In this document: positions 22,478 to 59,669 of the stretch, piece by piece
Layout: every line of letters starts with the position of its first letter
Position numbering within the stretch: position 1 is the stretch's first letter
NCBI GenBank assembly: GCA_965637545.1
Contig: OZ281494.1
Coordinates: 16,616,001 to 16,680,000 of the forward strand
Direction of reading: 5' to 3'
Origin: Phallusia mammillata
Taxonomy: Eukaryota
DNA: 64,000 bases
Made by a program: the position numbers and the translations under genes
The notes under the pieces: generated by a model
Database searches by the model: none
Told to the model about the DNA's origin: nothing
What the model saw: only the letters and a program-made list of their open reading frames with translations

Positions 22478-24003
22478 TCAAGACTTGTCAACTACAGAGT
22501 AGGTAGCTTCATCTTGCGCAAGTTCCACTCCTCTGTGACTTTTTACTGTCCCACGAAAGGTATAAAGAATATTGTCAACCATTCGAGGTTTGTTTACTTC
22601 AGTATAAACGTCACCACTCGATGTTGTTGGGGTTTCTTTAGGAAATACAGGACTCTCTGGTTTTTGTGTTTCACTTGCACTCTCATTCTTTAAGTCATTT
22701 TTGCCAGCCGCTATATTGTATGTTGAGCTGTAAGCGTTTTCCTGGTCCACAGAGGATAGATTTTGATAACGCGAATCAACATAAGCAACTGCAGGTGATT
22801 CGTCAACTCTTGTTGGAGTGTTTTGGAATGGCTTGCGGCGTTGCGTAGTTTTTTGCTTTTTCCACCTGCAGACGTTAATAAACCTTTACATATATTACAA
22901 GATCTAATCAATTATACGAATTCCTACCTAACAAAACATATCACTACCACCACAATAACGAGCAACAAAACTCCGACCGATGCCCCGATTGCTGCAGCGA
23001 GTATCGTGGAATTGTCAGAATATGTTCCAGTCGTGCTTTCACCTGAAAAGGCTTTGTACACCGTTTACGGTAAAATACGTGTTTTATACAAAAGGCCAGG
23101 TTGAGCGAATTTTATTTAAATAAAGACAGTCGTTGGTTGCAAAAATCGAATCTTCATTTGTAAAAAAAACACCAAAAGTAGCTTTACCTGTTGATTTTGT
23201 AGATAACCTGGTCGTGGTGGTTGTTGCGTGAAAAGGTGAATCTAAAATAAGACTTGGTGTGGTATGTGGTAAAAATATAAATTACCTTTACTTTTTTTAA
23301 GTTACCTGTTATGTTCACAATGTAATACTTTAATCCGAATCCGAGTTGGTTTGTATCTTGTCCGTCCGAATAGAAATATACTGTCCATCGTGGTTTACTT
23401 GACCTTAGCAAAGTAGTGTTTGTGCAATTTAGTGCGTCTTTCCATTTGTCCAGTTGTTTACTTGAAATGTTTGTGCCATGAATCACGTAACACTCGCCTC
23501 CTTGCGTCTCTCCGCACAAATTTAATAAATCTGTTTCATTGTGGTCTGCAACATATTCACACATTTCGAATACAGTTTAGATGGTATTTTATTGCACTTA
23601 CCTTCTGTAAACGTTAGATGGTCTACGCATGAGCAATTGTATACGTCTTTGTTTTGACAAAAAAGTTTGTTGTTTCTCTTAATTTGCAAATAGTTGACGT
23701 GTATTATCATTAGTTCGTAAGTTACATCGATAGCAAACTTCCATTTACACGCTTGGTTAACTGGATAAGTTTTATCTGTTCCGTTTTTTTGTGGGGACCT
23801 AATGCTTCCATTCTTTTCTGTTATATATCCGTCTGTTACGTTGCATGTTAGTTGCGTCGCTTTTACATCAGCTGCAAGCACAAGAAATTGCAGTAATTTA
23901 AATGTTTGGAAATTACCCATGATATGAGTTTGCTAATAATAATAAATTTGATTTAACCTTTCTTACCAATGAGAATAGTCACGGCTGTCAATAGAAACAT
24001 CAT
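22478..24003 (-). CDS. R12: 8-Cys CUB receptor (ectodomain type X), class A multi-ITIM tail
   Basis: Signal MMFLLTAVTILI; CUB TCN..NGSIRSP..TYPVNQACKW..DHL / NLCG..YFYSDGQDTNQLGFGLKYY; stalk; TM ILAAAIGASVGVLLLVIVVVVICFV; tail SRYQNL, DVYTEV, VDNILY, ATYSVV. Confidence 0.85.
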
Positions 24004-24189
24004 TTTGAGGTTGCATGTACAACCAAACTTGTGGACCGACAAAACACTAGAAAAACTAACTGATTTTTCTGCCTAACAACTAAAGCAAGTTGGTTCCTAA
24101 AGTTTTCCTTCGGACTATTCGTTGTAACTTTAAAACTACACGCTGGCTCATGTCGCTAGCCAAACTAATAACTACACATATATTGCTCA

Positions 24190-24471
24190 TCATCTGCGTG
24201 ACGACATGTTAGGTTTCCAGGTTGCAGTGAGGTTGTATGAATCAGGTGTAAAATCTAATTGTATAGTGACAGTCTTGGTTCGAATGTAATGTGTCATTGG
24301 TTGCGACGTATTGTTTTTATTCCACACTTTCATTGACCCTGAAATCCAGTGGCTCTTAACTCGTTTTAGGCTAGTGACCACCATTTGAATCAAATGAATT
24401 TTGTAGACCAGCCCATTGTTAAATGGGGACAGAGAAAGCATCCACAACAAGCATATTGACTTGAAATACAT
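24190..24471 (-). pseudogene. Possible relic CUB C-terminal exon
   Basis: Open frame ending ..YIRTKTVTIQLDFTPDSYNLTATWK, resembling CUB C-terminal strands. No partner exons were found. Confidence 0.25.
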
Positions 24472-25365
24472 TCTTTCAAAACAGAATTCGGAGAAGTTAT
24501 ATCAAACTACTTTACACCTAACGATAAATGTTTTTTTGTACGAAACGTTGAATGAACTGTGGCCTATTTGTAATTTTTCACCAAATATACTTAACGTCCT
24601 GTGGACCACCGAAAAAATCATTATGGACCACCAGGTGGGAACCATTGTTGCAATCGTTGCAGAACCTATATTATTTTGGGGCGTTTACTGAGTTTAGGTG
24701 AGCAAAGTATTGAAAAATACGGTACAGTTTAAAAAAAAAAATCCAACTCGCATCAGTCGAGTAGTTGTGGATGACTTAGTGTTAAACTTTGTTAAGTTTT
24801 TACAGTATTATTTTTAAATATCATTTCGAAGCAGTTAATTTTTATGAACGCGTTTAAAACCTCAAAACACCATCAATGTTTGTTTTTTTGTTAACTGTTT
24901 TGTTCTGGTGTTTTAGTATCACCGTTTACACCGTTAATATGAGATGCTAAAAATGACGTAATGTTTCGATGCAACACGTACTTAGATGCTTTAATAATAA
25001 TAAAACAACTGTTTCTTCCCAAAAAGCAAAACTACAAACCCAACCGGGTTTCTCTTCTCTCTAAGACCAAACAACAATTTTTGTATTTCGGTTGAAAGAG
25101 CCTCTGATTTTGTTGAGTTTCAAGTAACTTAAAGCTTATGCAATCAACACCATCAACTAGGAATGTGCTTATGAACAGCTTTATACACAGCATATTTTCT
25201 AGCGTTTGGTGTGTAATAATATATTTTGTTGGACTGTAAGCACCTGGATTCGCACGGTAGCTTGCGCAACAAAATATTAGTTCATATGTTTTGTCCTAAA
25301 ATGATAGTGTAATGTAAAGGTTGATAGCCTACTTAAAGTATTATAGGATACTTTGCTTTTTTTAT

Positions 25366-26000
25366 TTGCCTGCAGTTACAATAACAATAAAATACCTAAC
25401 CAGAATCTAAATTGGTTCGTATCGTGACTGTCCGAATAGAAATTACCCGACCATAGTTGTTTACTAGATCAGTGTGGTCCAACTTTATTTTGTTGCGGGC
25501 CATTTAAAATCGTTAACTTACTACGCGGGCCAAGGTTTAAATTTTTGCAGGAAAAACCTTTTTCTGGGCCAACTCTAGGGTAACTATACACCTTTTTTAC
25601 CTATAGATAAGTTTATTTTTATACTTTATAGTTATTTACTCAGTAGAAGCTGTCAAAAATATTCAGTTTCCACTCTAGCGCAGAAATGCCCCTGAACGGT
25701 TTGGAGAAGCAGAACCCTTTATTACATAACAATGCCTTGTCATGCGTCACAATAGGAGATTTTATAGCATTTAGTGTGCGTTAATCCTGATATATTAAAA
25801 ACATTGAATTACTGAAGACAAAACTTATAGTTGTCATTAAAATGTTGGGACTTTCGCGGGCCAACAAAATTATCTCGCGGGCCACAATTGGCCCGCGGGC
25901 CTGCAGTTGGACCACGCTGTACTAGATCAACAAAGTTGTGCTTTTACAATTAAATTCCTCTGTCCATTTATCTCGTTGTTTTTGTAACATATGGGTGCTA
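25366..26000 (-). pseudogene. Relic type-X CUB exon interrupted by a hAT MITE
   Basis: With 25470-25927 removed, the sequence aligns by eye with R12 exon 23305-23500 (tccgaatagaaat, tccattt shared; translation ..NFYSDSHDTNQF..) but contains stops. Confidence 0.6.
25470..25919. mobile_element. Non-autonomous hAT MITE, 450 bp
   Basis: 14-bp TIR cagtgtggtccaac / gttggaccacgctg, perfect 8-bp TSD tactagat (25462-25469 and 25920-25927), and subterminal gcgggcc motifs. Confidence 0.95.
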
Positions 26001-26390
26001 TGAAGAAATCAGTTCACTTTAACACTAGTTTTAAATAGTATACGAAGTTTACTTTATACTTTCCTACCGATTAGAAAAACCAAAATTGTAAATAAAAACA
26101 TCAGTTTTCTTTTGCAGAATTTGTCGGAAACGCACTATGTAAAAAACAAGTTGGTATGTGTTGCAATTAGCTGCTTATCATGTTATTATCCTAATATATA
26201 ATGGTCGAATTGTTTGTTCCTCTTATTTTTTCTTCGACATGAAAACATACAAAAGTAAATTGAAAATTGTCTGTTGACGTGATAATATTGTACAATAACG
26301 CATGTAAAAAATAGTGATGGTATCTGTGTTGTTGACATAGGTTTCATCACTAAAAGTTTTAAACTAGAGGGTGACATTCTTTAGTTGTGA

Positions 26391-28423
26391 TTACTCGATT
26401 TCCACGTAGTCGCATTTCTGAACTGTCATTGGAATTTCGTAAAATGCGTTGTGTGAGGCGGCGTCAGGTTTAGGTTGTTTGTTGATGTTCCTTGCAACGT
26501 TTGCAGAACTACATGCGGGACTTGGTACAACGTATTCTGCTGCAACGTTGGCCATGTTGGAGTTAACGTATGTAACTTCTGTTGGATTACTCGTAACCTT
26601 AGATGAAGCGTCAATCTGTTGTTTTCGTCTGTAAAACAAAAGTCACAAAGTTTTATTTTACTTTCTTTGCCACAGCAAATTTTTAGGCTTTATGCATTAA
26701 TCGTTGTGAGAATTGGGTCACTTATGATCAAATACGTATTGGGTTCGTAAACGTAAGCCTACCTCAAACAACACAGAATCAGGATAATCAGCAGCATTAG
26801 CAGTATTCCACCCGATGTCCCAGCAGCAACAGCAATGATAGAAATTGAGTTATTAGCATCATGTTCTGGAACCGAGAAAAAATGCCCAGGAATTTTTTAT
26901 ATATGTATGATTTTGGTTAAGTTTGAGAAAGTACTCGTCGCAATTTATATTCTGTGTATTTTAACGCGGTATGTAACAGCGGGATTATTTTTATAATCCC
27001 AAACATTTCATTACCTGTTGTGAGTGTTGTATTGGTCGTCGAGGAAGTTGTTGTGTAATTAGCTGTCTCTGAGATAAATAGAATAGTAAAATGGTTATAA
27101 TTTGGTTATATACACTTGTGTCATTGTTTGTGTTACAGTAAATTTTTACCAACAATTTTGTTTGAAAGACGATGTTGTGTCGGTACTTGGTGTAACTTCT
27201 AATAAAAAGATTCGGTATAGCGCCTTCAATGGGCCTGGCGTACTGTGATTCTAATAAAAAGATTTTAAAATTCGATTGATATTTTATGATCGATACTTTA
27301 AAATTCGATCGTATTTTATGATTGATACTTTATTTAATGCTTTTACATTTTACCTACAATAACCTAAAGCATACAGCCTCCGCATAAATACGTAGACAAA
27401 ATTATTAATAAGTTTATGAAAGTGTTTGAGTGTTTATTGTCAGTCTTTGGGATGATGAAGTTGGTAGAGAAAAATTGTTGCCGAAATGACAGTACAAGTG
27501 AAAAATTTGTTGGAATTCAAAGTATCTGCCCTTTGAAAACACCAATACGCATAATCACCTGTTGACGATTTTGTAGGCAATGACTTTGTTGCAGTTGTAG
27601 CTTGAAACATATTAGGGGCAAAATCTACGCAAAATATTTTAGTGTGGTAATATATCACAATTTGGCTTTTTTTTGGTTACCTTCAGTTACATTAACAATA
27701 TAATACTTTAAACCGAATCCAAGTTGATTTGTATCTTGTCCGTCCGAATAGAAATATACTGCCCATGGTTGTTTACTTGACCTTAGCGAAGTGGTTTTTG
27801 TGCAATTTACTCCTTCTTTCCATTTGTCCAGTTGTTTACTTGAAATGTTTGTGCGATGAATCACGTAACACTCGCCTCCTTTCGTCTCTCCGCACAAATT
27901 TAATAAATCTGTTTGATATTGAGCGGGGCCTGCAACTTTAAACATTCTAATATAGTTTAAATACATCTTAGATTGTATTTTATTGCACTTACCTTCCCTA
28001 AACGTTAGATGGTCTGCACATGAGCAATTGCTTATGTATTTGTTTTGACAAAAATCATTTTTGTCCTGATGAATTTGCAAAAAGTTGATGTGTATTATCA
28101 TTAGTTCGTGAGTTACATCGATAGCAAAGTTCCATGTACACGCTTGGTTAACTGGATAAGTTTGATCTGTTTTGTTCTTTTGTGGGGAACTAATGCTTCC
28201 ATTCTTTTCAGTTATGTCTCCGTATTTTATGTTGCATGTTAATTGCGTCGCTTTTACATCAGCTGCAAGCATAAAATAGGTATCGCCGATTTTAGGCATT
28301 TGTATGTTACTCGAGATTCAAAATGCATTGATTATTTAAATATAATATACAGTGTTGGCTTAAAGCATCCTTACCGACAAGAAGAATCATGACTGTCAGT
28401 ACAAAAATCATTGTGCCCTTCAT
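26391..28423 (-). CDS. R13: type-X CUB ectodomain on a class B tail
   Basis: Signal MKGTMIFVLTVMILLV; CUB exons closely similar to R12; stalk exons; TM SIIAVAAGTSGGILLMLLIILILCCL; tail VTYVNS, AEYVVP, FYEIPMTVQKCDYVEIE*. One stalk exon (about 27110-27200) may be damaged or skipped. Confidence 0.75.
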
Positions 28424-28969
28424 AGAAAACGAAGTTGTCTGATTAACGAAGTACCTATAAAAACCAACTAACATTTGCTATCTTGCGAATAAAGAAGTCG
28501 GTAGTATGTATTACTTTTATAATGAATTTACATGTATACAATCTGTAGGTTAACACCTTGCTCACTGTCTACATGTATTTAAGCATGATACTAGCTGCTC
28601 AAACCACAAGGCGCTTATTGACGAAGTGTTCTATTTTCTCGTTGAAGTATGACTCAATTAATCAGAGCTAACACCTAATTGGAATGATACACCTACCTCG
28701 AAAGCAATGTGTCATCCTATTAGATGCATACATTGTGCTTGCATCATTGACTTATTTGATTTTTGCACTACAAAAAAACCCTCAAAATCGAAAGTGGTGT
28801 TAGTGTAAATTTGTTTAACTTTTAGAGCGAAAATACGAAACAAGGAACGCATATGTTGCAAACTTTGTACCTTTGTTATATTATCACTACTCGTGAGTCA
28901 TTTGTTTTGCAAATAACTTTTTTTAAAAACGCATTTTTTGTTGTTGTGGCTATCATCAGTCTCCACAGT

Positions 28970-29469
28970 TGTGGAAAGTCTCAATAAGCGTTGTTGTGTC
29001 AGGCTTCGTCAGATGAATGTCGTTTGGTAATCTTCCTTCCAACGTTATTATTGTAACGTGAATATTCAAATAACTTAAAAGTTACAAGAGACGTAGTCGG
29101 GGGTTGTGGTTTAATTTATTCAACTCTCAAAGCAACCGTCAGATACTAATAGCGTTCATAAATAGTCTGCAAAATAAATTATTCTTAGAACGGCCACAAA
29201 ACTTCCTTTTACCATTCTTCCTTACCATCTTAAGCTGACAAAAATCTATAGCTTTGGGCGGTACATTTTTTATGGTTATAGTTTTGTTGTTGGTTTTTCG
29301 CGCTCGCACATTCCTGTGCATTTGGAACGTCTGCTAACACTGACGTTTGGGAGACCATAATGCACTTTATTGTCCTAAATGTGTATATAAATATTACTTG
29401 ACGGGTGGTACTAAATTCCGCATGGTAACTTTTGGTAACATAGGGTATCATTCGGTGTTTTAATATCAC
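28970..29469 (-). pseudogene. Possible highly decayed receptor remnant
   Basis: Fragments ..VLADVPNAQECASAK.., ..RKFCGRSKNNLFCRL.. and a Thr-rich segment occur in family order but in broken frames. Confidence 0.25.
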
Positions 29470-31016
29470 CGTATACAGTTTGCAGCGTTATTTTGAAATG
29501 CTAAAATGGCGTTTGAAGCTTGCAAAGATATTCTTTTGTCAATAACTTTTATTAGCTTTGCATCGGTTTAGGAACTTAAGTATCAGTAATGTTTTCTTGT
29601 TTATGTTGTTTGGATAGGTAAACGCTTCGACATGAAATAAAGTCAAAGATAAACTGAAAATTCTCGCTTTTTGCGTTTGTTTTATTGTCTGTTAATGTGA
29701 AAAACATTGTAATATTGTACAATTACACATGTAAAAATGTGGTGATAGCCTTGTTGTTGATATAGGGTTCATCACCCAAAAGTTCAAATTAGAGTGACAT
29801 TCTTCAGTTGTGATTACTCGATTTCCATGTAGTTGCATTTCTGAACAGGCATTGGTATTTCGTAAAATGCGTTGTGTGAGGCGGCGCCAGGTGTAGGTTG
29901 TGTGTTGATATTTCTTGCAACGTTTGCAGAACTACATGTGGGCTGTGGTACAACGTATTCTGCGACGGCGTTTGCCATGTTTGAGTTAACGTACGTAACT
30001 TCTTTTGGATTACTCGTACCCTTAGAGGGAGAGACAATCTGTTGTTTTCGTCTGTAAAACAATGATCACAATTTTTTATTTTACCTTTTTCGCCACAGCA
30101 AATTTACAGGCCTTAGCCATTATTCGTTGTAAGAATTGGGTAATTATGATCAAATGCGTATGGGATTCGTAAACGTAAGCCTACCTCAAACAACACAGAA
30201 TCAGGATAATCAGCAGCATTAGTATTGCAGCCGATGTCCCAGCAGCAGCAGCAGCAGTGATAGAAATTGAGTTATGAGCATCTGGTCCTGGAACCGAGAC
30301 AAAAATATCCCCAAAACTTTTATTTATATGTATTATTTTAGGTACGTTTGAGAAAATACTCGTCAAAAGTTTAAGAAAATACTCGTCAAAACTCTGTGTA
30401 TTTTAAGGCGAATTGTAACAACGGAATTAGTTTTATGGTCCTAAAAATGTCATTACCTGTTGTGAGTCTTGTTCTGGTCGTCGAGGAAATTGTTGTGTAA
30501 TTAGCTTTCCCTGAGACAAATAGAAAAGTAAACTGGTTGTAATTTACACTTGTGTCATTGCTGGTGTTACAGTGGTGGTGTTCACCTTTTTGTTTGAAAG
30601 TCGACGTAGTTTCGGTGTTTCGGTGTTTGGTGTACGGACAGTATAAACAGTTATACTTATAGCACAGGGTTTTACACAACGTTTATTGACGTTGAATTTT
30701 ACCAGCCTTTTTAACCCACTTTTAAGGGAAGGATACAAAATAAATTGCCATAAGATCAGTGTAAAAGTTTACTATCCTTTTACTATAATAATAAATGCAA
30801 GTATTTGACTGCTTCAAAAATTTCTAACATGAAAAACTTCCTCAAAAAATAGATAAGCACGTGAAGGACTGCGGTGTACTTACCTGACGTGATAGATTTA
30901 AAAAAGTGCAGTTGAAATCCAGCCTGGTTGTTTGTAGAACTCGAATAAAACTTGATGTCATATATGGATAAACTTGTTTTTAACTGCGACATCGTACTGC
31001 AACGGTAATAATTTTT

Positions 31017-32672
31017 ATGGGTCCCCTTCCCTGAAGGGGACACATATTGATTTTACTCGATTTATTTGTTTTTTTTTTCTTTTTTTCTTTTTTTTTCTTT
31101 TTTTTTTCTTGTTTTTTTTTCTGCCCAAAGTTTGTCCACCTCGTTTTGCCTTGAAATGTTTGATGGATTTGGATGAAATTTTCACAGAAGGTAGATATAG
31201 TTATGTAGATGTGCCATTTGTTTTGTTTGACTCGATAGCCCCAGTGTTTACCCCACTAGCCCCCTAAAATGGGTAAATTTTGAACAATGTCCGAATTGGA
31301 TGAAATTTGAAAAGTTTGTTCATTGTGCCATTTTAGGGCATCGTTTGTTGTGTTTTACACTGTAGCCCCAATATTTACCCCAGTAGACCCCTAAAATGGG
31401 TGATTTTTTTAAACAATGTCCGATTCGGATGAAATTTGGACAGTTTGTTCATTATGCTTTTTTAGGGCGTCGTTTGTTGTGTTTTACACTGTAGCCCCAA
31501 TATTTACCCCAGTAGACCCCTAAAATGGGTGATTTTTTTAAACAATGTCCGATTCGGATGAAATTTGGACAGTTTGTTCATTGTGCTTTTTTAGGGCATC
31601 GTTTGTTGTGTTTTACACTGTAGCCCCAATATTTACCCCAGTAGACCCCTAAAATGGGTGATTTTTTTAAACAATGGCCGATTCGGATGAAATTTGGACA
31701 GTTTCTTCATTATGCCATTTTAGGGCGTCGTTTGTTGTGTTTTACACTGTAGCCCCAATATTTACCCCAGTAGACCCCTAAAATGGGTGATTTTTTTAAA
31801 CAATGTCCGATTTGGATGAACTTTGGACAGTTTGTTCATTATGCTTTTTTAGGGCGTCGTTTGTTGTGTTTTACACTGTAGCCCCAATATTTACCCCAGT
31901 AGACCCCTAAAATGGGTGATTTTTTTAAACAATGTCCGATTCGGATGAAATTTGGACAGTTTGTTCATTGTGCTTTTTTAGGGCATCGTTTGTTGTGTTT
32001 TACACTGTAGCCCCAATATTTACCCCAGTAGACCCCTAAAATGGGTGATTTTTTTAAACAATGGCCGATTCGGATGAAATTTGGACAGTTTCTTCATTAT
32101 GCCATTTTAGGGCGTCGATTATTGTGTTTCACCATGTAGCCCAATATTTACTGCTTAAGCCACCTATTTTTTAAAAAACGTCCGATTTGGATGAATTTTT
32201 GATAGTTTTATGAATTTGGCATTTGTAGCTGTCGAATATTGTGTTTCACCCTGCAGCCCTATTATTTACCCTACCAACCCCCAAAAATGTGTGAATTAAT
32301 CAACAATACATTTTGACAGTTTGTATAATATGCCATTTTGAGATGTCAGTGTTTTATGCTATTTAGGCACACAAACTTATAACAATGTCTCAATTGCATG
32401 AGATTTAGACAGTTTGTACTTTACATAACTTTTTTTTTAGGAACACTACCAATCACTGTGTTTGACTTTATAGCACCGTTTCTTATGGTTGTCTGTTTAC
32501 AACTTTGCGGTTTTGGGGACCCATGAGTTTCTGCCTGCAGAAACAAATCAAGATTATAAAAAATGTTGGCTAATATAGGACCCAATATAAATAAATATAG
32601 AGAATATATTACAGTTTGCAGAATAGGTTGTAGTGTATATGCTATAGTAAAATGTGCTAAGCCACCCTTCTA
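31017..32672 (+). mobile_element. Helentron-associated non-autonomous element (HINE/DINE-1-like) carrying a satellite array
   Basis: Subterminal IR atgggtcccc (31017-31026) / ggggacccat (32515-32524); 5' hairpin gtcccctt-aaggggac; 3' hairpin gtttctg-cagaaac (32527-32544); T-rich microsatellite near the 5' end; insertion into a T-run. The last ~125 bp are of unclear origin. Confidence 0.7.
31261..32160. repeat. 129-bp tandem satellite, about 7 copies plus degenerate flanking units
   Basis: cccctaaaatggg recurs at 31261, 31388, 31517, 31646, 31775, 31904 and 32033 (129-bp period after the first unit). Confidence 0.95.
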
Positions 32673-34120
32673 GTTCCATTTTGTTTGATTCTGTGGACTG
32701 TTTGGTGATCCCAACACAAAGCATGTTGTGTTTTTTGTTTTTCCACACATGTACAGTCGGTTTTCCTGGTCGTCTAAATACATCGTGTCACGAAAAAGAT
32801 GTACAAACATTGTTTTAATAAACTTGGAAACTTACCGCCAAGTATAGTTAGGTAATCTTCGCATTTACAATGGTCCAAACTTCCAATGCAAAACTGATTT
32901 TTCTTATCTTTAACGATTTCCAAATAGGTTATCACAATGATCAAAACTTGCTTATCGGGGCTCATTGGAAATTTCCATGTACACGATTGATTAGCAGGGT
33001 ACGTTTTGTTATAACGAAAGTCAAAGCCAGGTGAGGTAATTGTTCCATATGTGCTGTTACCTACATCTACACTCACATTGCAATTTTGACTGTTTGTTAC
33101 ACCTGAACAAACAAAACAAATTTGCATAAAAACATCCCGATTTTCAATCATAGAAATGCTTACTTGTAAGAAGTCCCATAATCAAGAACCCTTTTAGGTG
33201 AACTTTGTTTTCCGGAACAAAAAGTCTCCAAATTTTGTCCACGATCGTCATAGCTTCTGTGATATTTTTTTGCAATAGCTCGAACAACTAATTCCTGTTA
33301 TTGGTCATTGCTGAATTGCCTCCAAAACTTCAGTAATTATGAGAAGTAGGCGTTTCGGGATGACAGTATTTGCAGCTTCTGCAAATTGTCTAAACTATTT
33401 TTGATTGTAGATATTTCTGTAAACGACTAGGGTCGAACTAATTTAGTCTGTTTAATTTCCCACTATTTTTCGTCACAACTGCTTTTAACCTACTGATAGC
33501 TAACTGCTAAAACATTTATACGGAAATAACGCGTAACTGCAGACAGTTCTGTGTAAGGGTCAACTTCCGAACAATTCATAGAAAGAAAAGCCTTAAAATT
33601 TGCCAAACCGCTTCATGGAAAATGAGTTGGTAAACACATGATTATTCTCCTAATGTCACAGAAAAATTGCTCTGTTGATTTTTTCATGTTGCAACACATC
33701 ACACATTCCAATCTTATGAACCGCTGAATAAAAAGTACGAAGTTAACACAAATCGTTGTGAACAACGAGTGTTTTGTATGTCAAGTAGGACAACATTTTT
33801 TTCTAAATGCAAGAAACATTTGAGAAAAAGTTAATCTCGCGCTTACTTCCTTGGTGATTTATGTCATTACTGTCTTGTGTGGACGTCGCGTGCGAAGATA
33901 CAATTTGATATTAAATTTTGTCACTGAAGAGGACATTTGTGAAGCGATGGCCAGCCGCAATTAAAATAAAACAGTTGAATTGATGATCATGAAAAAATCG
34001 TGCACATATTCATTGCTTGGATTTGCTCTGAATTCCGAATTGTCTGCCCGGTTTGATATCTCACATCTTGTAGTCCTGACATTATTTGAATCAGGCTATT
34101 CGTTTTTGTATCTCGTGTTC

Positions 34121-35800
34121 TCATTTCATTCCCGCGTACAAAACATTGTCCACATGCATACTTTCACTTTCTCCGTACAAAACATTGTCCACATGCATAC
34201 TTTCACTTCCTCCGTACAAAACATTGTCCACATGCATACTTTCACTTCCTCCGTACAAAACATTGTCCACATGCATACTTTCACTTCCTCCGTGCAAAAT
34301 ATTGTCCACTTGCAAACTTTCGCTACCAGTTGCTTCTTGTTGCCCTTGAACTGTGTCGTGTCCGTTCCGGGAATGCGAAACTTCGTGGGGCAGGTCTACT
34401 GTATTTGGCTTGTGTACCACAGCATACATTTCACCATCTCCTTGGGCCAAATCAGACATTACGATGTCGTGCTCTGAAGCCGTTCTGGGCGTTTGTTGCG
34501 GTTCTTTACTTTTGCCTTCTGGCAATGTTCCTACAGTCTTCGTTTTTCTTGCATGCTTTCTTCTGCAAAATGTTAAAGCACAGTGACACGTGTTTTTTAG
34601 GCAACTTGAATGTAAAGTAACAAACGCACCTGAGAATACATATTACAAACACGATAACAGCTATTCCCACAGCGCCTCCAGCCGATGCAATGGCAATTAT
34701 TGTGAGTTGATTGCTGGATGTTTTCTGTGGAATTGACGTTGTAGATTCCGTTAAAGTCAGTTTTTGATCTTCTGATTCTGTGTATAGTTACGTATAAGTT
34801 TGTTACTTGCACTGTGCGGCTTTAACAATACAAGTTTTGTTTGTTTTTACTTCGTATGTAAAACAAGAACACATATAATACTTGGTACTAACCCTCTGAA
34901 GTCGACCGTGAAGTTGTAGCGGCAGGTCCATGCGACGTTGGACGGATATCCGGCTTTAAATCTTATTAGTCGAAACATAATTATTGAGATAGAAACCTTT
35001 TTAAAAATAAGAGAGACAACCTAATGTTTTGTAGAGACACTTACCAGATATGTTAACTCTTTGATAATCCAAACGAAACCCGTCCCCATGAGGTTTTGCG
35101 GAGCTGGAGTAAAACCAAATTGCGTATTGTGTTTTGTTTGTGGTCAACAAAATTGGGAAATCGCAAAATTGTTGTTTTCCCAAATCGATTACAGGAGATT
35201 CTGATTCGATTTTTGGTTTCAACACAAGGCACATTTTGCTCGTCATTTCTCCACACAGGTAAAATTTATTTACCTTGTCATCTTGCGTACCAAAAAATGA
35301 ATTTCAGCATATGCATATAAGTTTATTTTATAGCGATCACTTTCAACCTACCGCTAAGTATGGTGAGATGATCATTGCATTGGCAAGTTGCCAACGTTCC
35401 ATTACAAAAACTTGATCCGTTACTTTTGGCTAGTTTTATATAATTGACCGTAATAAACAGAACTTCATGGTAGATAACTGGAAGCTGCCATTGACACGAT
35501 TGTGCCTGGGATATATTTGAGGGTGAAGAGATCGTTCCTGACATGTTAGAAATCAAACCTGAACTCACATCACAAGGTAGAGTTGAACCTAAAATATAAA
35601 ATGGACAATGAGTGCTTATGTATTCTGGGAGCTTCTAAATATTCAAAATGGCATAAACATCAGCAAAATGTTTACTGCTTCTACATAAAGTAATGTTATG
35701 ACTAACCTTGACTGAGTCCAATGCAACCAGCACAGCATAATACGAGAACTATATAAACCAATGTCCTCTGTTGAGATTCTTTTGAAGTATATCGACACAT
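34121..35800 (-). CDS. R15: 8-Cys CUB receptor, class A tail with amplified VDNVLY motif
   Basis: Signal exon MCRYTSKESQQRTLVYIVLVLCCAGCIGLSQ; CUB halves LPCD..SGTISSP..QSCQW..CQCNDHL / YLCG..WFYSSSAKPHGDGFRLDY; stalk; TM LTIIAIASAGGAVGIAVIVFVICIL; tail EMYAVV plus repeats. All exons are in frame. Confidence 0.85.
34131..34322 (-). repeat. 39-bp coding tandem repeat (about 5 units) encoding GGSESMHVDNVLY
   Basis: gtacaaaacattgtccacatgcatactttcactt recurs every 39 bp. Four units end in Y; the most 5' unit has H. Confidence 0.95.
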
Positions 35801-38800
35801 TCCGTCAGAGACTTTAAACAAACCCAAGAGAAATTCAAAATTGTTCTACAGACTTCTAAATCCCAGTCAGTCAGTTGACACGATTGATCTTCAGTAAGTG
35901 CTGTATTTGTAAACCTTATTTCTGCAACATCCTGGAAACAAACAAAAATAATGTTGCCAGCAACATAGTTCAACTGTTTAAACTCCATATGCCCCTGACT
36001 GACACAAAAAGTGACAAAAATACTCTGGTAAAAAACGTTTCTTGGAACTGACGTCCAGGAAGCCTTGTGCCATGACCGGCCTTGTACATTAGGTTTAAAT
36101 AAACTTACACACATATGAACGTCAGTAAAGTTAAACACAACTAACTCAAGGGTTACGAAACTTATTATTGCACTATATGTTCCATGTCATCGTTTTGAAA
36201 CATAGATTTACATGCAACACGATACGAAAAACGTAGCAGAACGTCACTCATCTCACGCGTGCAGAGGATCAGATCCGCATGTGTGAGTGACGCCAGCGTC
36301 AATGGATATTCATCACGGCACTTCGAAGTTCCTTTACTATTTGTTTACCTTCTATGGCTTTGGTGGGTTGGCCACTTTACCATTTTCGTTTAAGGTTTGG
36401 TGAAAACAAAGTATAGCTCTTTCCATGAGTTTAAACCATGGCGATTACTTTGTTTTGTATTTGTACTTACCCTAGCTTTTTACAATGTTTGTTTTTAACA
36501 TCTTGAATATTTTTTTGTATTTCAAAGTTGTATCCATCTCCAGAATACAGGGTAAGGTTGATGCTGTGTAGTTGGTTCTACACATATTCTGAAAATATGC
36601 TACTTTCGAAGCGCCACACGGAAACTCTGATGCGGTCTAGTCAAATAAAGCATTCTATCATTATAGCTGTTGCGTAGTCTTTCTTGATGTTTCTTCCGTA
36701 AATACCTTAAAAGTCAAACACTGTATCAAGCTTCTGGGTCGTTTAAATCAGCTTTTGTTTCGCAACGTTTTTTTGATAATCGTCTAAAACTCAACTAATT
36801 GTGACAACCTTGGTATGTATTGGGTAAGCGGGAAAAAACCGCACAACAAAAATGATATTTTTTTATATTTTAATACTTTTATGTACCTTTGCCAAATAAT
36901 AAATGTTTGTGGTTGAGGCGAAATACGCAAGTTTATGACTTAAAACAATGTTTATGAGATGAAGAATTTAAAGATGTTACAGGGACAAGCCATGTCAAAA
37001 CACGCTTCATGTGTTTCTTTACTCCCTTTCGATGTATAAAATGTTGTCAACTTGTATTCTTTCGCTTGCAGATTGGGGCAAATTTACTTCATTTGTACCG
37101 ATTTCGGAATACACAAGTGTTTCAATAGTTTTATCTCTTTTCGGTTTATGTACTTCAGCGTATTCCGAGCTGTCGCCTTGCTCAGTATCAGTTGATACAG
37201 TGACAGGTCTTGAAAATGTTGAGGTTTCTTGTTGTGTTTCTACTTTCTTGTTGGTTGAAATTTGTCCTGTTTGTCTCTTTTTTCTTGTAAGCTTACATCT
37301 GCGCAAAATCACAAACGTGTAACATACAGCGTGTATACGACATAGTGGTAAAAACAACAAATGATTAAAGTACCTTAATAATATGACAATTATCACGGCT
37401 AGTGCAGTTATTCCTACTGCACCTGCTGTGGCTGCAGCTATGATGATTACTGTGATTTTTCTGGCATGTTTGCTTGAAGTTGCGGATATAGGTGTCGTTT
37501 CAGTCTGGCTGTCACTTTTGGTCGAATTATAGGTGTTCTTTGATTCTGTATTAGCGAAAGGATGTGTTACTGGTCGTATCATCTTAGTCCAGTATTTACG
37601 GCAACAAATAGGCTTGCGCTATAAATTAAACCGACGCCAAAACGGTTGTTTCTGCCATCGTTGTCAGGTTGTAAACTTGTAATGAATTTTTGATCTTTAA
37701 ATTTAAACAAAAATCTTGTGGGGTAACCTGAGTGTGGTTTAAAAAAAATAGGCATGCAAAATGTATTTCACAGACCCTTCTGACAAGATGACCATGCAGG
37801 AGTGATGGACCGACTGTAAACTTGCTGCAAACTTTTGACAATTAACTTTTAAACATTAATGTACTATTGAGACTGGGATGGAAAGGCAATTGCCAAAAGA
37901 TTGGGGTAAATCTTTACAACTGTTTTCCTAAATAATAAATATACCGATTATGAAGTTTGTGCCAGTATTTGATTGCTTCAATAGGCTTTGCTACATAAAC
38001 AACGCTAGATTAAAAGATAAAAAGCATATGAGAGCACTGCAGAGTGCTTACCTGACTTTGATTTAACAAAATTCAGTCGAAACCCGGCCTGGTTGTTTGT
38101 AGCACTCGAAGAAAACTTGATGTCGTATGTAGATAAATTAGTTTTTAACAGCGATACCGTACTGCACTTAAAATAATTTTTTCGTCTGGTTTGATTCTGT
38201 GAGGTGTTTGGTGATCCCAATACAAAGCATGTTGTCTGTTTTGTTTTTCCACACATGTACATTCGGTTTTCTTGGTCGTCTAAAAACACGTCACAAAAAG
38301 GTGTACAAACATTTTTTTAATAAACTTGGAAACTTACCGCCTAGTATAGTTAGATAATCCTCGCATTCACAATGTTCCGAACTTCCATTGCAAAACTGAT
38401 TTTTCTCATCTTTTACAACTTCGAAATGGGTTATTACAATCATCCTTACCAGGGTTCATCGGAAATTTCCATGTACACGATTGATTGGAGGGGTATGTTT
38501 TGTTATTTAGTAAGTTAAAACCAGGCGAAGTAATTTCTCCATATGTGTCGTTTCTTACCTTCACACTCATATTGCAATTCTTGGCTGTTACACCTGAACA
38601 AACAAAACAAATTTGCGTGAAAACATCCCGATTTTCAGTCATAGAAATGCTTACTTGTAAGAACTACCGTAATCACTAATACTTTCAGGTGAGCTTCGGT
38701 TTCTAGAACGAAATATTTCCACGTTTTGTCAACAACCGTCATTGCTTTAGTGGTTTTTGCTTTTATACTTTCACCTTGTTGGTCACTGCTGAAACGCCAC

Positions 38801-39788
38801 TAAAAACTTAAGTATTTGACAATTATAAAGTTAAGGAAGATAGGTTTTGTTATTTTATCACATTGTCAAAATTATTTCCGATTAAAAATGCTTCTACAAA
38901 CGATTCATATTTGATCTGTTTAACCTCACCATATTTTTCGTTACAACTGCTATTTAACCTACTGATAGCTGACTGCTGGAACATTTATGCGGAAATAACG
39001 TGTAACTGCAGACAGTTCTGTGTAGGGGTCAACTTCCGAACAATTCACAGAAACTTTGGGCATACGTGTGCCAAACCGCTTCATAGAAAGGGGTTGGTAA
39101 ACATGTTTATTCTTCTAATGTCGTAGAAACATAGCTCTGTTTTACAGAAACAAATTTGTTTTGTTGCAAACATCGTAGATTCCACTGCTAAAAATGGTGT
39201 CAAGTCAGCACGGATTGTTGTAAATAACATGAATGTTTTGTATGTCAAGTAGGACAACCTTTTTTCAAATTTCTTTAGTGTTCTTAATGCAAGAAGCGTC
39301 CGAACAAAAGTTAATATCACGCTCACATTCTTCGTGATCTAACTCATTACTGCTGTCTTGTGTCTGCAACACCAAGCACTACTAGCTTTGCATACCTTGC
39401 TTAAATGCTTTGTGGTCGTGTTGGGATTTGAAGGTAATGTCCCAGATAAGTTTTGTAAAACGTGTATTAATACATTTTTTTTCACAGCACGAACCAAAAA
39501 AATAGATATACCGAAACGCATTTGAATCGGAAAATGCAGTACATGAACAAAAACTACAAGTGGTATGATGTATCTAAAAAACAGCTTCGTAATACTTGAT
39601 CACTCCAAGTCCATGTATCCATAGTTTTTTAGGGGTATTGGAGTTTCGTAAACGTCGACTTCTGGCTGTGTTTGCTGCGTAACATTGTTGTTTTGTGGGG
39701 CAGATTGTTCTGTTCCTGACAATGTAACTACGTTTTTGAACTTGTTATTGTTAGCCACAAAATAATTTACCTGGGTTGGATATTACTT
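35277..39788 (+). repeat. Segmental duplication block 1, copy A (copy B at 55882-60751)
   Basis: Colinear near-identity in exons, introns and intergenic DNA, e.g. 36350-37000 vs 57345-58000 and 38750-39500 vs 59680-60480. Confidence 0.9.
37019..38742 (-). pseudogene. R16: type-Y CUB receptor with tandem ITIMs; 8-nt deletion in CUB exon 1
   Basis: Signal exon MTVVDKTWKYFVLETEAHLKVLVITVVLT. The aagttttg present in R23 is missing near 38447, causing a frameshift. TM ITVIIIAAATAGAVGITALAVIIVILL and tail SEYAEV, LVYSEI, VDNILY are open. Confidence 0.7.
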
Positions 39789-49932: not shown

Positions 49933-51716
49933 TCACATGTTCATGTACGTAGCATCATAGGAAACTCGGCGAGCAGGTATCGGCGCCTCATAGAAGTCCT
50001 CGGTGGTTGTTTCGTTCACATATATGCTGTTATGATCGGCCTTTTGCTGCTTAGAACCCTCTCCTTGCGTGCCAACATTGATGTACATTGGTTGCTCACC
50101 AGTAGGTTGTGATTTTTCGGTCGCTGTTTCTTGCGTATCAGCTTCAGGTACTTGCTCCTGAACTGAAAGTGGATGTTCGCTACCTATAAAATCATGCAAA
50201 AACACAGAAAATTAAGAATAAAAAATGCGTGTTAAACAAGTCATATTGAAGTGAACAAAGTTATATTTAAACTAAAATGGTTTAGTGTTGTTAGTTGCGT
50301 TGTCAATTAAAACTTCGTTGTTTTTTAGCCAAACACAGTGATTTTTGGATGCACAATTTATTGCCAACATAGTTTGATCATAGGACGAAATTAATTTGCT
50401 TTTTTGTACCTACGTCGTTTTGTTCGTGCTGGCTTGTCGTTGCCCCTAAAACAGAATAACATGAACAAAAGTTGTACTAGATAAAATATTATTAGCTCCG
50501 ACTTCCAAAAGTATATTTATTACATATTAGCAATCAATGCTGCAGCCTCGAAATTACGTTTTAAAATTAGGTGACTTACCTTATCATGCAACACACTAAT
50601 ATTACGATGGCTGCAATCGCCACTAATCCTCCCGCAACGATTCCAATTATTGCTTCCGTTCGTAATGAAGTTGCTTCTGGATTGGGAGCCAGCACTGAAA
50701 CACACAAACATCACTTTGTTCTCATGACCGTTGTGTGCGTATTGAGTAATGTGGTTAGTGCAATATGAACTATTTTGTTGAATAAGGAGGAAGTAAAGAA
50801 GCGCTTTTTAAGAAGTTGGGGGTTCGATTGCTGTTTGCGAGCAAGTTTTGTCATGATAAACTTTCGACTTAGTGACTATAATATAAATCTGTCACAATGG
50901 AAACTCGTGCATTATGTGAAAAAAAAAAAACAAATAAAAAAACGCTTACCAGGACAGTCGGTCAAAGTGTAGTTCATTTTTAACACGACACCAGCCGGAG
51001 CGCTGGAGTTAATTGCTAGTGTGAACCAAGGGTAATTTCCACTAAAGTTTTTCACGTTCATCCCCGGCAAGTGGCAAGTACTGTCTGTGGATTGAAGGAC
51101 AAAGCACTCGGTGTTGTTTATGCTCATAGGCCCCATGTAGGTCATTCCTTCAAACAAATGTATATTCTTTATACTGTAGTTTTTAAATTTAAAATTCAAC
51201 ATTATTATGTTTAACGTAAAAACATTCTTTGTTTATATTGTTACTACGTAACTTCGATTTGAAAATAATAATCCTTAATCAATGACTCAACTACCAGCAC
51301 CTTTTAAAGTAATATTACAAAAATACAACTGTTACGGATAAGTTGTATACTCAAATATAATAATCAAACTTCAGGAAACTGACAAAATAAAGCCAGAAAA
51401 CCAACCTGATGGGAACTGAATTTTTGTGTTCTCATTTAGCAGTTCAATTTTGCCGATGAACACTAACTTAACGGACGGAAATGGGATATCTTGTGTTCTA
51501 GTTAAGTTATATTGAGCATTGGTGTAGCTATACTCTTGGTCAAGGTTAAAGTCGCCGCATTGAAGTTGGGCTTGAGTTGTTCTTTGAAATAGAACCACTA
51601 CACATAGAAATAGTTAGTATGTTAATTACACTGCAGAATTTATCTCATTTGTTTGATTACTTACCTTCTACGATAAGAAGATAAAACTTGAATGATTTAA
51701 TGTAGCAGAAATTCAT
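49933..51716 (-). CDS. R21: divergent CUB-like receptor, class B tail ending YMNM
   Basis: Exons 51665-51716, 51406-51597, 50950-51147, 50580-50694 (TM AIIGIVAGGLVAIAAIVILVCCMI), 50414-50445 and 49933-50183 (MYINV, IYVNE, FYEAP, TYMNM*). Phases are 1-1-1-2-1. Confidence 0.8.
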
Positions 51717-55881: not shown

Positions 55882-56340
55882 GTCATCTTCTTATCAAAAA
55901 TGATTTTTAGTGTATGTGTATAGGTTTATAGCAATCACTTATTACCTACCGCTAAGTAGGGTGAGATGGTCAACGCATTGGCAAGTTGCCAACGTTCCAT
56001 TACAAAAACTTGGTCCATTCATTCTGGCTAGTTTTATGCAGTTGACAGTAATAAACAGAACGTCATGGTTGATAACTGGAAACTGCCAGTAACATGATTG
56101 TGCCTGGGATATAGTTACGGGTGAAGAGATCTTTCCTGACATGTTAGAAATCAAACCTGAACTCACATCACAAGGTAGAGTTGAACCTAAACCATAAAAT
56201 TGGACAATGTGTGCCGTCTTAAATATTCTGGGAACTGGTAAATGACAAAGTGTTTACTGCTTCTACATGAAGTAATTTTATGACTTACCTTGACTAAGTC
56301 CAATGCAACCAGCACAGCATAATACGAGAACTATATAAAC
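55882..56340 (-). pseudogene. R15b: 5' fragment of an R15 duplicate (partial signal exon, CUB exon 1, 5 nt of CUB exon 2)
   Basis: Aligns with 35277-35758. The start codon is replaced by the hAT element at 56341, and everything 3' of aag|atgac is missing. Confidence 0.8.
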
Positions 56341-57344: not shown

Positions 57345-58012
57345 TTCTATGGCTTTGGTGGGTTGGTCACTTTACCATTTTCATTTAAGGTTTGGTGAAC
57401 ACAAAGTATCGCTATTGCCATGAGTTTAAACCATGGCGATTACTTTGTTTTGTATTTATACTTACCCTAGTATTTTACAATGTTTGTTTTTAACATCTTG
57501 CATATTTTTTTGTATTTAAAAGTTGTATCCATCTCCAGCATACAGGGTAAGGTTGAGGCTGTAGTTGGTTATACACATATCCTGAAAATATGCTACTTTC
57601 GAAGCGCCACACGGAAACTCTAATGCGGTCTAGTCAAATAAAGCATTCTATCATTATAGCTGTTGCGTAGTGTTTCTTGATGTTTCTTCCGTAGATACCT
57701 TAAAAGTTAAACACTGTATCAAGCTTCTGGGTCGCTTAAATCAGCTATTGTGTCGCAACGTTTTTTTGATAATCGTCTAAAACGCAACTAATTGTGACAA
57801 CCTTGGTATGTATTGGGTAAGCGAAAAAAAAACCGCACAACAAAAATTATATTTTTTTACATTTTAATATTTTTATGTACCTTTGCCAAATAATAAATGT
57901 TTGTGGTTGAGGCGAAATACGCAAGTTTATGACTTAAAACAATGTTTATGAGATGAAGAATTTAAAGATGTTACAGGGACAAGCCATGTCAAAACACACT
58001 TCATGTGTTTCT

Positions 58013-59669
58013 TTACTTCTTTTCCATGTATAGAATGTTGTCAACTTGTATTCTTTCGCTTGCAGATGGGGGCGAATTTTCTTCAGTCTCACCGATTTCG
58101 GAATACACAAGCGTTTCATCTCTTTTCGGTTTATGTATTTCAGCGTATTCCGAACTGTCACCTTGCTCAGTATCAGTTGACACAGTGACGGGCCTAGAAA
58201 ACGTCGAGGTTTCTTGTTGTGTTTCTACTTTCTTGTTGCTTGGAATTTGACCTGTTTGTCTCTTTTTTCTTGTGTGCTTACATCTGCACAAATTTGAAAA
58301 CGTGTAACATAGTGTACGACATAGTGGCAAGAAGTAAAAGACAACAAATGATTAAAGTACCTTAATAACATGATAATTATCACGACAAGCGCAGTTATTC
58401 CTACTGCAGCTGTGATGATTACGGTGATTTTTCTCGCATGTTTGCTAGAAGTTGCGGACATAGGTGTCGTTTCAGTCTGGCTGTCACTTTTGGTCGAATT
58501 ATAGGTGTACTTTGATGCTGCATTAGCGAAAGGATGTGTTACTGGTCGTATCATCTTAGTCCCGTATTTACGGCAACAAATAGGCCTGCGTTATAAATTA
58601 AACCAACGCCAAAGCGGTTGTTTAATGCTATTAAACAAAAAACCTTTTGGGTAACCTGGGTGTGAGTATTAAAAAATAGGTATGCAAAATGTATGACTTT
58701 ACAGAAATGATCAACCGACTGTAAACTTGATTTAAACTTTTGACAATTGAATTTTAAATATCGCCTGTACTTTTGAGAGTAGGATGGAAAGGCAACTGTC
58801 AAAAGATTAGGGTAAATATTTACAACCCTTTCCTAAATAATAAATACACTAATACTAAAATTTGTGCCAGTATTTAATTGATTTAATAGGCTTGGCCACC
58901 TAAAAAAACACGAGAATAAAAAAATAAAAAAAAGCATATAAGAATTACACTGCGGAATGCTTACCTGACTTTAATTTGAAATAATTCAGTTCAAATCCTG
59001 GTTGGTTGTTTGTAGCACTCGACAAAAACTTGATGTCATATGTAGATAAATTGGTTTTTAACAGCGATACCGTACTGCACTTATATTTATTTTTTCGTTT
59101 GGTTTGATTATGTGGGGTGTTTGGTGATCCCAATACAAAGCATATTTTGTTTTTTGTTTTCCCACACATGTACAGTCGGTTTTCTTTGTCGTCTAGAAAC
59201 ATAGCGTCTCACAAAAGGTGCACAAGTATCTTTTAATAATGTGGGAAACGTACCTCCTAGTATAGTAAAGTAATCTTCGCATTTACAAAAATTCAAACTT
59301 CCATTGCAAAACTGATTTTTCTCATCTTTTACAACTTCGAAATGGGTTATTACAATCATCAAAACTTCCTTATCAGGGTTCATCGGAAATTTCCATGTAC
59401 ACGATTGATTGGCAGGGTATGTCTTGTTTTCAAGTGCGTTAAAACCAGGTGAAGTAATTCGTCCATGTATGTTGTTTTCTACCTTCGCACTCACATTGCA
59501 ATTCTGACTGTTTGTTACACCTGAACAAACAAAACAAATTTGCGTGAAAACATCCCGATTTTCAGTCATAGAAACGCTTACTTGTAAGAACTACCATAAT
59601 CACTAATACTTTCAGGTGAGCTTTGTTTTCTCGAACGAAAAGTTTCCACGTTTTGTCAACAACCGTCAT
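58013..59669 (-). CDS. R23: duplicate of R16 with intact CUB exons and tandem-ITIM tail
   Basis: CUB exons are open (..MNPDKEVLMIVITHFEVV..). The TM is 5 aa shorter than in R16; tail SEYAEI, LVYSEI, VDNILY. The first stalk exon is partly deleted, so the reading frame across the stalk is uncertain. Confidence 0.65.

Follow-up and report, generated by a model that had tools for sequence, protein, structure and literature searches.

The mixing of receptor heads and tails is a route to rapid diversification in the natural killer, myeloid and CEACAM gene clusters of vertebrates, and also in the Botryllus fester genes. In the CEACAM1-related paired receptors of mammals (CEACAM1/CEACAM3), the exons of the ligand-binding N-domain are kept alike by gene conversion and recombination (PMC2832619). 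In the tunicate Botryllus schlosseri, the ectodomains and intracellular regions of the Fester family and its co-receptors (FF/FcoR) have been mixed by intergenic recombination; identity between fester and uncle fester is 91% for the C-terminal region and 37% for the ectodomain (PMC12582321). Here, a 64,000-nucleotide stretch of the genome of another tunicate, the sea squirt Phallusia mammillata, was analysed (contig OZ281494.1, positions 16,616,001 to 16,680,000; hereafter the window, in whose numbering all positions are given). It contains a tandem, same-strand array of genes for lineage-restricted type I membrane receptors with a CUB domain as the head. Very probably, heads and tails of these receptors recombined between neighbouring paralogues, giving mosaic receptors by exon-cassette exchange within a birth-and-death array. 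Such exchange has precedents in the CEACAM, Siglec and Botryllus fester genes, and what is unusual here is the CUB head.

As in CEACAM, the genes form a tandem birth-and-death cluster, a block of high identity is confined to the exons of the ligand-binding domain and scarcely extends into the flanking introns, and one head is found both on tails with an ITIM (immunoreceptor tyrosine-based inhibitory motif) and on tails with other tyrosine motifs. Unlike CEACAM, the head is a CUB rather than an Ig-V domain, the non-ITIM tail has no canonical immunoreceptor tyrosine-based activation motif (ITAM), and the organism is an invertebrate chordate. With the Botryllus FF/FcoR genes they have in common a tunicate host, clustered single-pass receptors, incongruent trees for the head and for the transmembrane segment with tail, and tails bearing ITIMs and other Yxx[ILV] motifs; DVYTEV in the tail of one gene, R12, fits the 'core-2' pattern [A/D]VYxxV (PMC12582321). 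Variable copy number and many diverged copies in Botryllus are a further likeness to the array. The FF/FcoR heads, however, are Ig-like and Sushi domains, and those genes are tied to an allorecognition phenotype, whereas the genes here are not. No sequence relationship to FF/FcoR was found, phmmer giving generic CUB proteins only, and full-text literature searching turned up no publication describing a family of CUB-headed ITIM receptors, either in tunicates or in other invertebrates.

Shared cassettes and conflicting trees

At a GC content of 36.7% the window is AT-rich, and it contains no N. A hydrophobic-exon scan found about 22 transmembrane-like exons across it, every one on the minus strand, and positions 22478-38742 hold five genes of the same family, R12 to R16, all on that strand; a further member, R23, lies beyond them. 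Splice models were built by reading the sequence and then checked by translation. Each gene has, in order, a signal-peptide exon, two exons (CUB1 and CUB2) for a single CUB domain, one or two short stalk exons rich in Ser/Thr, a transmembrane exon and a single tail exon, separated by GT-AG introns of about 60-200 nucleotides. The CUB and stalk exons all have phases 1-1, the transmembrane exon 1-2, and the tail exon is entered in phase 2, and exchange with breakpoints in introns therefore preserves the reading frame. This scheme is valid for R12, R13, R14, R15 and R23; R16 has the identical layout, with phases displaced only by a deletion. Three types of head (X, Y and Z) and several tails are combined in these genes, which are as follows with the cassettes they share.

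22478..24003, minus strand: R12, an intact 367-residue type I receptor, head X with tail A; spliced open reading frame (ORF) with all splice sites GT-AG. Exons: signal peptide 24003-23967, CUB1 23871-23602, CUB2 23545-23306, mini-stalk 23241-23188, transmembrane 23042-22928, tail 22865-22478.
23291..23883, minus strand: CUB-X cassette as present in R12, made up of CUB1 exon, intron 2 and CUB2 exon and common to R12 and R13; 86% identical to 27666-28274.
26391..28411, minus strand: R13, an intact 330-residue receptor and apparent mosaic, head X with tail B; open spliced ORF. Exons: signal peptide 28411-28375, CUB1 28262-27993, CUB2 27929-27681, mini-stalk 27600-27559, stalk2 27068-27015, transmembrane 26865-26763, tail 26628-26391.
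27200..27558, minus strand: R13 switch interval, intronic; no similarity to R12 or R14.
26236..27200, minus strand: R13 copy of the tail-B cassette (stalk1b-like piece, stalk2, transmembrane, tail and about 155 nucleotides of 3' flank); R14 counterpart at 29630-30633.
29814..33251, minus strand: R14, head Y with tail B, frame broken. Exons: signal peptide 33251-33164, CUB1 33102-32836, CUB2 left part 32773-32679, insertion, CUB2 right part 31016-30884, stalk2 30510-30457, transmembrane 30287-30185, tail 30051-29814.
34121..35800, minus strand: R15, an intact 408-residue receptor, head Z.
37019..38742, minus strand: R16, head Y with a tandem-ITIM tail, frame broken.
58013..59669, minus strand: R23, an intact 336-residue receptor, head Y with a tandem-ITIM tail; beyond 22478-38742.

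The combinations are X-A in R12, X-B in R13, Y-B in R14, Y with tandem ITIMs in R16 and R23, and Z with a 39-bp-repeat tail in R15; R12, R13, R15 and R23 are intact, and R14 and R16 broken. The identical head is thereby joined to differing tyrosine-motif tails.

Homology blocks were defined by self-BLASTN of the window and by a more sensitive run, with E about 0 for the main blocks throughout, and segment-wise identities of R12 and R13 were taken from a MAFFT global alignment. The close similarity of the R12 and R13 CUB exons claimed in an earlier, sequence-only reading was borne out: 23291-23883 matches 27666-28274 at 86.0% over 609 columns, and both peptides that reading had quoted are present in the spliced translations. 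This block comprises the CUB1 exon, intron 2 and the CUB2 exon, running from 12 nucleotides upstream of the first CUB exon to 15 nucleotides downstream of the second. The exons are 87% (CUB1) and 86% (CUB2) identical, and the heads as a whole 78% in amino acids and 89% in nucleotides. Intron 2 is 70% identical in the global alignment, or 84% (47/56) when aligned alone, and the flanking introns are at background (intron 1, 54%; intron 3, 51%; Fisher p 0.02 for the contrast with intron 2). Older, weak homology is seen in the signal-peptide exon (73%) and in the mini-stalk exon (64%).

In its second half R13 resembles a different neighbour. Positions 26266-27193 match 29684-30626 of R14 at 81.3% over 961 columns, through stalk, transmembrane segment, tail and 3' flank, with a reach to about 26236/29630 when MAFFT is used, while the heads of the two genes are of the distinct types X and Y, just as had been read from the sequence. 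Within this block identity is 81-86% for introns, 89-92% for exons and 84% for the 3' flank, and the sequence immediately outside it is unalignable. The type-Y CUB of R14 is that of R16 and R23, where, again as claimed earlier, it sits on a tandem-ITIM tail: self-BLASTN matches 30796-31016 to 37960-38181 of R16 at 76.5%, and 32683-33880, with CUB-Y and 5' flank, to 38189-39363 (R16) at 75.8% and to 59098-60293 (R23) at 76.4%. This match of about 76% takes in 0.6 kb of the 5' flank and runs through both CUB exons into the first 90 or so nucleotides of the next intron, and the R14 and R23 heads are 67-84% identical in amino acids, depending on the exon. The further statement that the R12 and R13 transmembrane segments and tails are unrelated held in part: there is no DNA match and a forced alignment gives 36% amino acid identity, but the transmembrane exons are distant homologues (34% over 35 residues by tblastx).

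Separate trees for the CUB exons and for the transmembrane and tail exons, the check proposed with the sequence-only reading, were built for the window genes with R15 as comparator, and they are significantly incongruent by the approximately unbiased (AU) test with both DNA and protein. The head DNA tree has (R12,R13) with support of 100/100 and (R14,(R16,R23)), and the transmembrane/tail DNA tree has (R13,R14) with 100/99 and (R16,R23) with 100/100. Grouping R13 with R14 was rejected for head DNA (log-likelihood difference 325, p 6e-5); for tail DNA, R12+R13 was rejected with p 2.5e-4 and R14+R16+R23 with p 1.5e-5. Protein trees concur, with R13+R14 rejected for the head (p 1.7e-66) and R14+R16+R23 for the tail (p 0.0017).

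Synonymous divergence (dS) is 0.17 between the R12 and R13 CUB exons and 0.24 between the R13 and R14 transmembrane and tail exons, and neighbouring segments are saturated or unalignable. Intron identity close to that of the exons, together with low dS, indicates copied cassettes and not merely conserved domains. A history without exchange, in which the genes are old whole-gene duplicates and the block pattern reflects constraint on heads or tails that differs from pair to pair, would agree with the somewhat greater similarity of exons than introns within blocks and with the weak old homology of the R12/R13 signal-peptide (73%) and mini-stalk (64%) exons. It is nevertheless very improbable, given introns and 3' flank at 81-86% within the R13/R14 block beside unalignable sequence just outside it, dS of 0.17-0.24 inside the blocks, and the rejection of a single tree by the AU tests. 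The ratio of nonsynonymous to synonymous divergence (dN/dS) for R12/R13 is 0.85 in CUB1, 0.43 in CUB2 and 0.66 in both CUB exons; it is 0.31 for R14/R23 CUB1, 0.57 for the R13/R14 transmembrane and tail exons and 0.27 for those of R16/R23. No value above 1 was found among these pairwise comparisons, in which two or three sequences per type are too few for site tests.

The R13 switch point and the probable mode of exchange

A scan of R13 in 100-nucleotide windows gave R12-like sequence at 28311-27712 (identity 0.73-0.96), sequence like neither gene at 27711-27212, and R14-like sequence at 27211-26212 (0.58-0.92). The R12-like similarity stops at about 27535-27666 and the R14-like similarity begins at 27193-27200, which agrees with the crossover at about 27200-27550 placed there by the sequence-only reading. 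The two blocks are separated by about 0.4 kb of intron sequence that is unrelated to either gene and bears repeats, namely a 32-bp tandem repeat (27264-27332) and a 36-42-mer (27209-27250) of high copy number genome-wide. The depth of the latter is about 41,500, against about 15, in the short-read run X2, and a 36-nucleotide segment (27213-27248) reaches about 3,000 times unique depth in public contigs. As the R12/R13 block is bounded at both ends, R13 is a mosaic of at least three parts.

At the upstream edge of the R13/R14 block, the 36-nucleotide segment 27213-27248 is bracketed by a perfect 16-bp direct repeat, AATCTTTTTATTAGAA (27197-27264). The high-copy 36-42-mer and the direct repeat at this edge of the tail cassette may be the footprint of a repeat-mediated event, or may be a coincidence. 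A stalk-like coding piece (…TDTTSSFKQN / …TETTSTFKQK) at 27150-27198 and about 30583-30640 is conserved between R13 and R14, the R14 copy having no clear acceptor, and is probably a dead stalk exon carried within the cassette. The 49-nucleotide piece (27198-27150) was discarded as an exon of R13, since its inclusion disrupts the frame and it has a degraded donor.

Whether the R13 junction could be a product of assembly was examined with X2 and X4, which are independent short-read contigs from two other studies. Contigs of X2 (26824-27238 and 27225-27616) and of X4 (26824-27213 and 27307-27616) match both sides of the R13 switch with no mismatches, and contigs of both cross the boundary of the R14 insertion at 31016 by about 22 nucleotides. 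A chimeric join of paralogous or allelic sequence in R13 or R14 would be conceivable in a region so rich in repeats and heterozygous, with very high-copy repeats in the R13 switch and the R14 insertion, where short-read contigs break, and heterozygosity seen at 29549-29804. Such an artefact is scarcely credible, however: at an identity of only 81-86% the blocks differ too much to be collapsed or mis-joined by an assembler, the contigs of the two other studies reproduce the unique flanks of each junction without mismatch and cross 31016, and the R13 ORF is open with consensus splice sites across the junction. At 29549-29804, X2 and X4 each have two alternative contigs: one is the same as the window, and in the other 13 letters differ and there are 11 gap positions. 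The animals sampled are heterozygous at this locus. Contig joints from 27250 to about 31015, with sides of only 24-27 nucleotides, were not trusted.

The two blocks of R13 are doubly bounded and of a size expected of conversion (0.6 and 0.96 kb), similarity is as high in the non-coding parts as in the exons, and synonymous divergence is far below that of the sequence next to them; the analysis takes these features together as pointing to non-reciprocal cassette transfer. A CUB cassette of about 0.6 kb (two exons and the intron between them) is common to R12 and R13 on otherwise old, diverged flanks, and a cassette of about 0.96 kb with stalk, transmembrane segment, tail B and 3' flank is common to R13 and R14. 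The head and 5' flank of R14 are a segmental copy of the R16/R23 type. The transfers would have been non-reciprocal ectopic recombination among neighbouring paralogues, by interlocus gene conversion or double unequal crossover, possibly assisted by repeats at the breakpoints. Decay came later, through insertion of a repeat in the R14 CUB2 exon and loss of 8 bp from R16. In the receptors so formed, the CUB head presumably binds an extracellular ligand and the tail tyrosines are presumably phosphorylated and read by SH2 proteins, in which case a tail swap would alter the signal given for one ligand.

Another possibility is tandem duplication of a unit made up of the tail-B cassette and the 5' half of the next gene. 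This would give R13 a one-step origin and would fit the presence of a head-X remnant downstream of R13, but it leaves the two-sided bounds of both R13 blocks unexplained.

Several points weigh against cassette exchange as set out here, or limit its detail. The direction and order of the transfers are not inferable from the window. Purifying selection on exons could give part of the contrast between block and flanks in R12/R13, where the intron-2 argument rests on about 60 nucleotides. At the boundary of the R13 tail cassette no flanking homology, normally needed for gene conversion, is visible, and what actually happened at that point may have been non-homologous or repeat-mediated. The protein AU test on the tail does not reject R12+R13 (p 0.07), as the DNA test does, because the terminal branch of R13 is zero. 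No contig spans the whole repeat at 27209-27330, and the two X2 contigs overlap by just 14 nucleotides. Finally, two RNA-labelled runs over 26000-31999 covered the high-copy repeats only and no exon of R13 or R14, and the splice forms given for R12 and R13 are predictions.

The CUB head, the tails and possible paired reception

The head is one divergent CUB domain, by profile and by predicted structure, with no detectable close relatives in the libraries searched. The R13 ORF scores 24.0 bits against the Pfam CUB profile PF00431 (cut-off 21.4, E 5e-5), aligning to profile positions 3-60 of 110 only, and the first-half exons of R12 and R14 fall slightly under the cut-off at 18.7 and 20.9 bits. 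With phmmer, 1.84 billion representative proteins gave 7 weak matches, the best at E 6e-10 and in the N-terminal half only, and the four that were looked up are CUB-containing proteins (DMBT1-like, tolloid-like). None of these representative proteins matched below 1e-10, with no relatives detectable outside the lineage, and a word-indexed protein search with the R13 CUB ORF gave no match. An AlphaFold2 model of the R13 ORF, with the window paralogues as alignment, had a predicted local distance difference test score (pLDDT) of 65.8 and a predicted template-modelling score (pTM) of 0.67; the core scored 70-84, and the intron-encoded loop 107-128 scored low, as expected. In a Foldseek search of the PDB with this model the top 48 matches were all CUB domains (PCPE-1, neuropilin a-domains, MASP, C1r/C1s, TSG-6, cubilin, spermadhesin), with TM-scores by target of 0.66-0.70 for the single-domain entries 2wno, 3pof and 4gza_H.

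With generic CUB domains (PF00431; neuropilins, PCPE-1, MASP/C1r/C1s, TSG-6, cubilin, DMBT1) the head thus has the fold in common, at a TM-score up to 0.70, as well as the hallmark C-x-V ... G-x-I-x-SP ... YP-x-NQ-x-C-x-W-x-F ... D-x-L-T-I ... CG ... F-x-S-x ... GF-x-L-x-Y. It differs in that a single CUB stands directly on a stalk, transmembrane segment and tyrosine-motif tail, and in having an inserted helix (residues 154-164 of the R13 ORF model) and extra cysteines.

By motif match (ITIM pattern [ILVS]xYxx[ILV]) the tails of R12, R16 and R23 are predicted to be ITIM-bearing. That of R12 has one canonical ITIM, SRYQNL, as well as DVYTEV and ATYSVV; those of R16 (SEYAEV and LVYSEI) and R23 (SEYAEI and LVYSEI) each have two. 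The R12 tail has Yx[EV]V[NH]KP and VDNILY in common with R15, R16 and R23, and class A and tandem-ITIM tails therefore form one broad class. The tail of R15 has a 39-bp repeat encoding four VDNVLY motifs. Tail B has four tyrosines, in YVNS, YVVP and YEIP-x7-Y[VM]EI, and a motif scan found no canonical ITAM, hemITAM or ITIM in it; its YEIP-x7-YVEI has ITAM-like spacing, with Pro at +3 in the first half. All six modelled transmembrane segments lack a charged residue able to recruit an ITAM adaptor, and those of R13 and R14 are free of Lys, Arg, Asp and Glu. The ITIM pair of R23 (tail 58013-58283) also matches the broad ITAM pattern Yxx[LI]-x10-Yxx[LI], and motifs alone therefore cannot assign the sign of signalling. 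In R16, a 9-nucleotide insertion stretches the ITIM spacing past the broad ITAM range.

A tail ORF at 53208-53450 has SYVNS and a C-terminal VYVELQ before the stop, a layout like that of tail B (TYVNS ... DYVEIE, stop), with no link found by BLAST. Tails of the tail-B kind may be a wider class in the array.

Both head types had been read earlier as existing in an inhibitory-looking and an activating-looking version. The inhibitory-looking half of this is in keeping with the predicted ITIM tails of R12, R16 and R23, and R12 and R13 are an intact pair, but tail B has no canonical ITAM or hemITAM, no modelled transmembrane segment is charged, and R14 and R16 are broken. Judged from its motifs, the label 'activating' for tail B is unsupported, and a division into inhibitory and activating tails is a tentative hypothesis that is rather improbable at present.

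In a working system of paired receptors, a class that includes KIR and Ly49, each CUB head would be kept in an ITIM version and an activating tail-B version, and gene conversion would hold the heads alike for a common ligand, as in CEACAM1/CEACAM3 or Siglec-5/-14. R12, with its ITIM-bearing tail, and R13, with tail B, are both intact with heads identical at 78% of amino acids and 89% of nucleotides, the common block scarcely enters the flanking introns, which is the pattern described for CEACAM paired receptors (PMC2832619), and the four tyrosines of tail B include YVNS (of the Grb2-type YxN) and a YEIP-x7-YVEI with ITAM-like spacing. We nevertheless consider it doubtful that the genes function in this way. 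Tail B is without a canonical ITAM or hemITAM and the transmembrane segment without a charged residue, the Y-type tail-B gene R14 is broken, as is R16, the sign of the signal is unreadable from motifs when the R23 ITIM pair also fits the broad ITAM pattern, and dN/dS of the R12/R13 heads (0.66; 0.85 in CUB1) is a clear sign of neither homogenisation nor positive selection. The X pair is intact in both members, R12 and R13; of the genes with head Y on an ITIM tail, R23 alone survives.

Decayed copies and the meaning of the array

The window also contains an insertion and two remnants of receptor genes.

31017..32678, no strand given: repeat insertion of 1.66 kb within the R14 CUB2 exon, placed by alignment to R16/R23.
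25351..26116, minus strand: remnant of a decayed third head-X gene, in which a signal-peptide-like exon (about 26030-26116) and two pieces of CUB2 (25931-26004, 25351-25468) are recognisable.
28993..29046, minus strand: isolated tail-B-like fragment of 54 nucleotides between R14 and R13, 78% identical to 26448-26501.

Alignment with R16 and R23 shows that the CUB2 exon of R14 breaks off after 32679 and continues at 31016, on the far side of a 1.66-kb insertion. Just past the insertion point there is an in-frame TAG, and the frame can be restored only by joining a weak cryptic donor at 32699 (ACA|GTCCAC) to an acceptor at 31030; from its sequence R14, the sole gene in the window with head Y and tail B, is probably dead. 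Within the insertion lie a T-rich tract (31061-31120), 7.3 tandem copies of a 129-bp unit (31217-32151, by Tandem Repeats Finder) and a 14-nucleotide terminal hairpin (31016-31046), and its depth in public runs is 1e4-1e5 times the unique level. For the insertion and for the repeat at 27209-27250, no tRNA, no Rfam family and no second copy in the window were found. Compared with R14 and R23, the CUB1 exon of R16 lacks 8 bp at about 38445; this deletion shifts the frame, and the translation of R16 meets stops. The sequence at the deletion (38440-38450) is CTG|GTAAGG, which resembles a consensus splice donor and is not present in R14 or R23.

The head-X remnant just downstream of R13 has 72-79% DNA identity to the R12/R13 CUB2 exon, with stops in all frames. 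A copy of the R15 5' end only (signal-peptide exon, intron and first CUB exon) lies at 55882-56342, with 83% identity to 35277-35760, and the sequence downstream of it yielded no second CUB exon to match. Larger segmental copies join 36350-39788 to 57345-60751 and 50259-52517 to 60762-62996. Birth and death of copies are evident in the array. As a separate observation, the last 6.6 kb of the window (57345-64000) mirrors 36350-39788 and 50259-53756 at 87%, 96% and 88%, with a junction at about 60751/60762; for the 96% stretch, a recent duplication and the tandem placement of a second haplotype are both conceivable.

In summary, the same genomic logic as in the vertebrate and Botryllus clusters is found here with a CUB head: phase-1 cassettes, conversion-sized patches, birth and death of copies, and tails that appear to bear ITIMs. 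A CUB-headed system of paired inhibitory and activating recognition in a sea squirt, in which conversion matches the R12 and R13 heads while the tails differ, and which serves self/non-self or pathogen recognition, is unlikely on present evidence. If it were true, chordates would have solved the paired-receptor problem a third time, by an independent structural route beside Ig and C-type-lectin heads. Should R12 and R13 prove to be co-expressed and to give opposing signals, this would show that chordates reinvent the architecture of tyrosine-motif paired receptors on binding folds unrelated to one another; should they not, the locus remains a compact and well-delimited example of exon-cassette exchange with mapped breakpoints.

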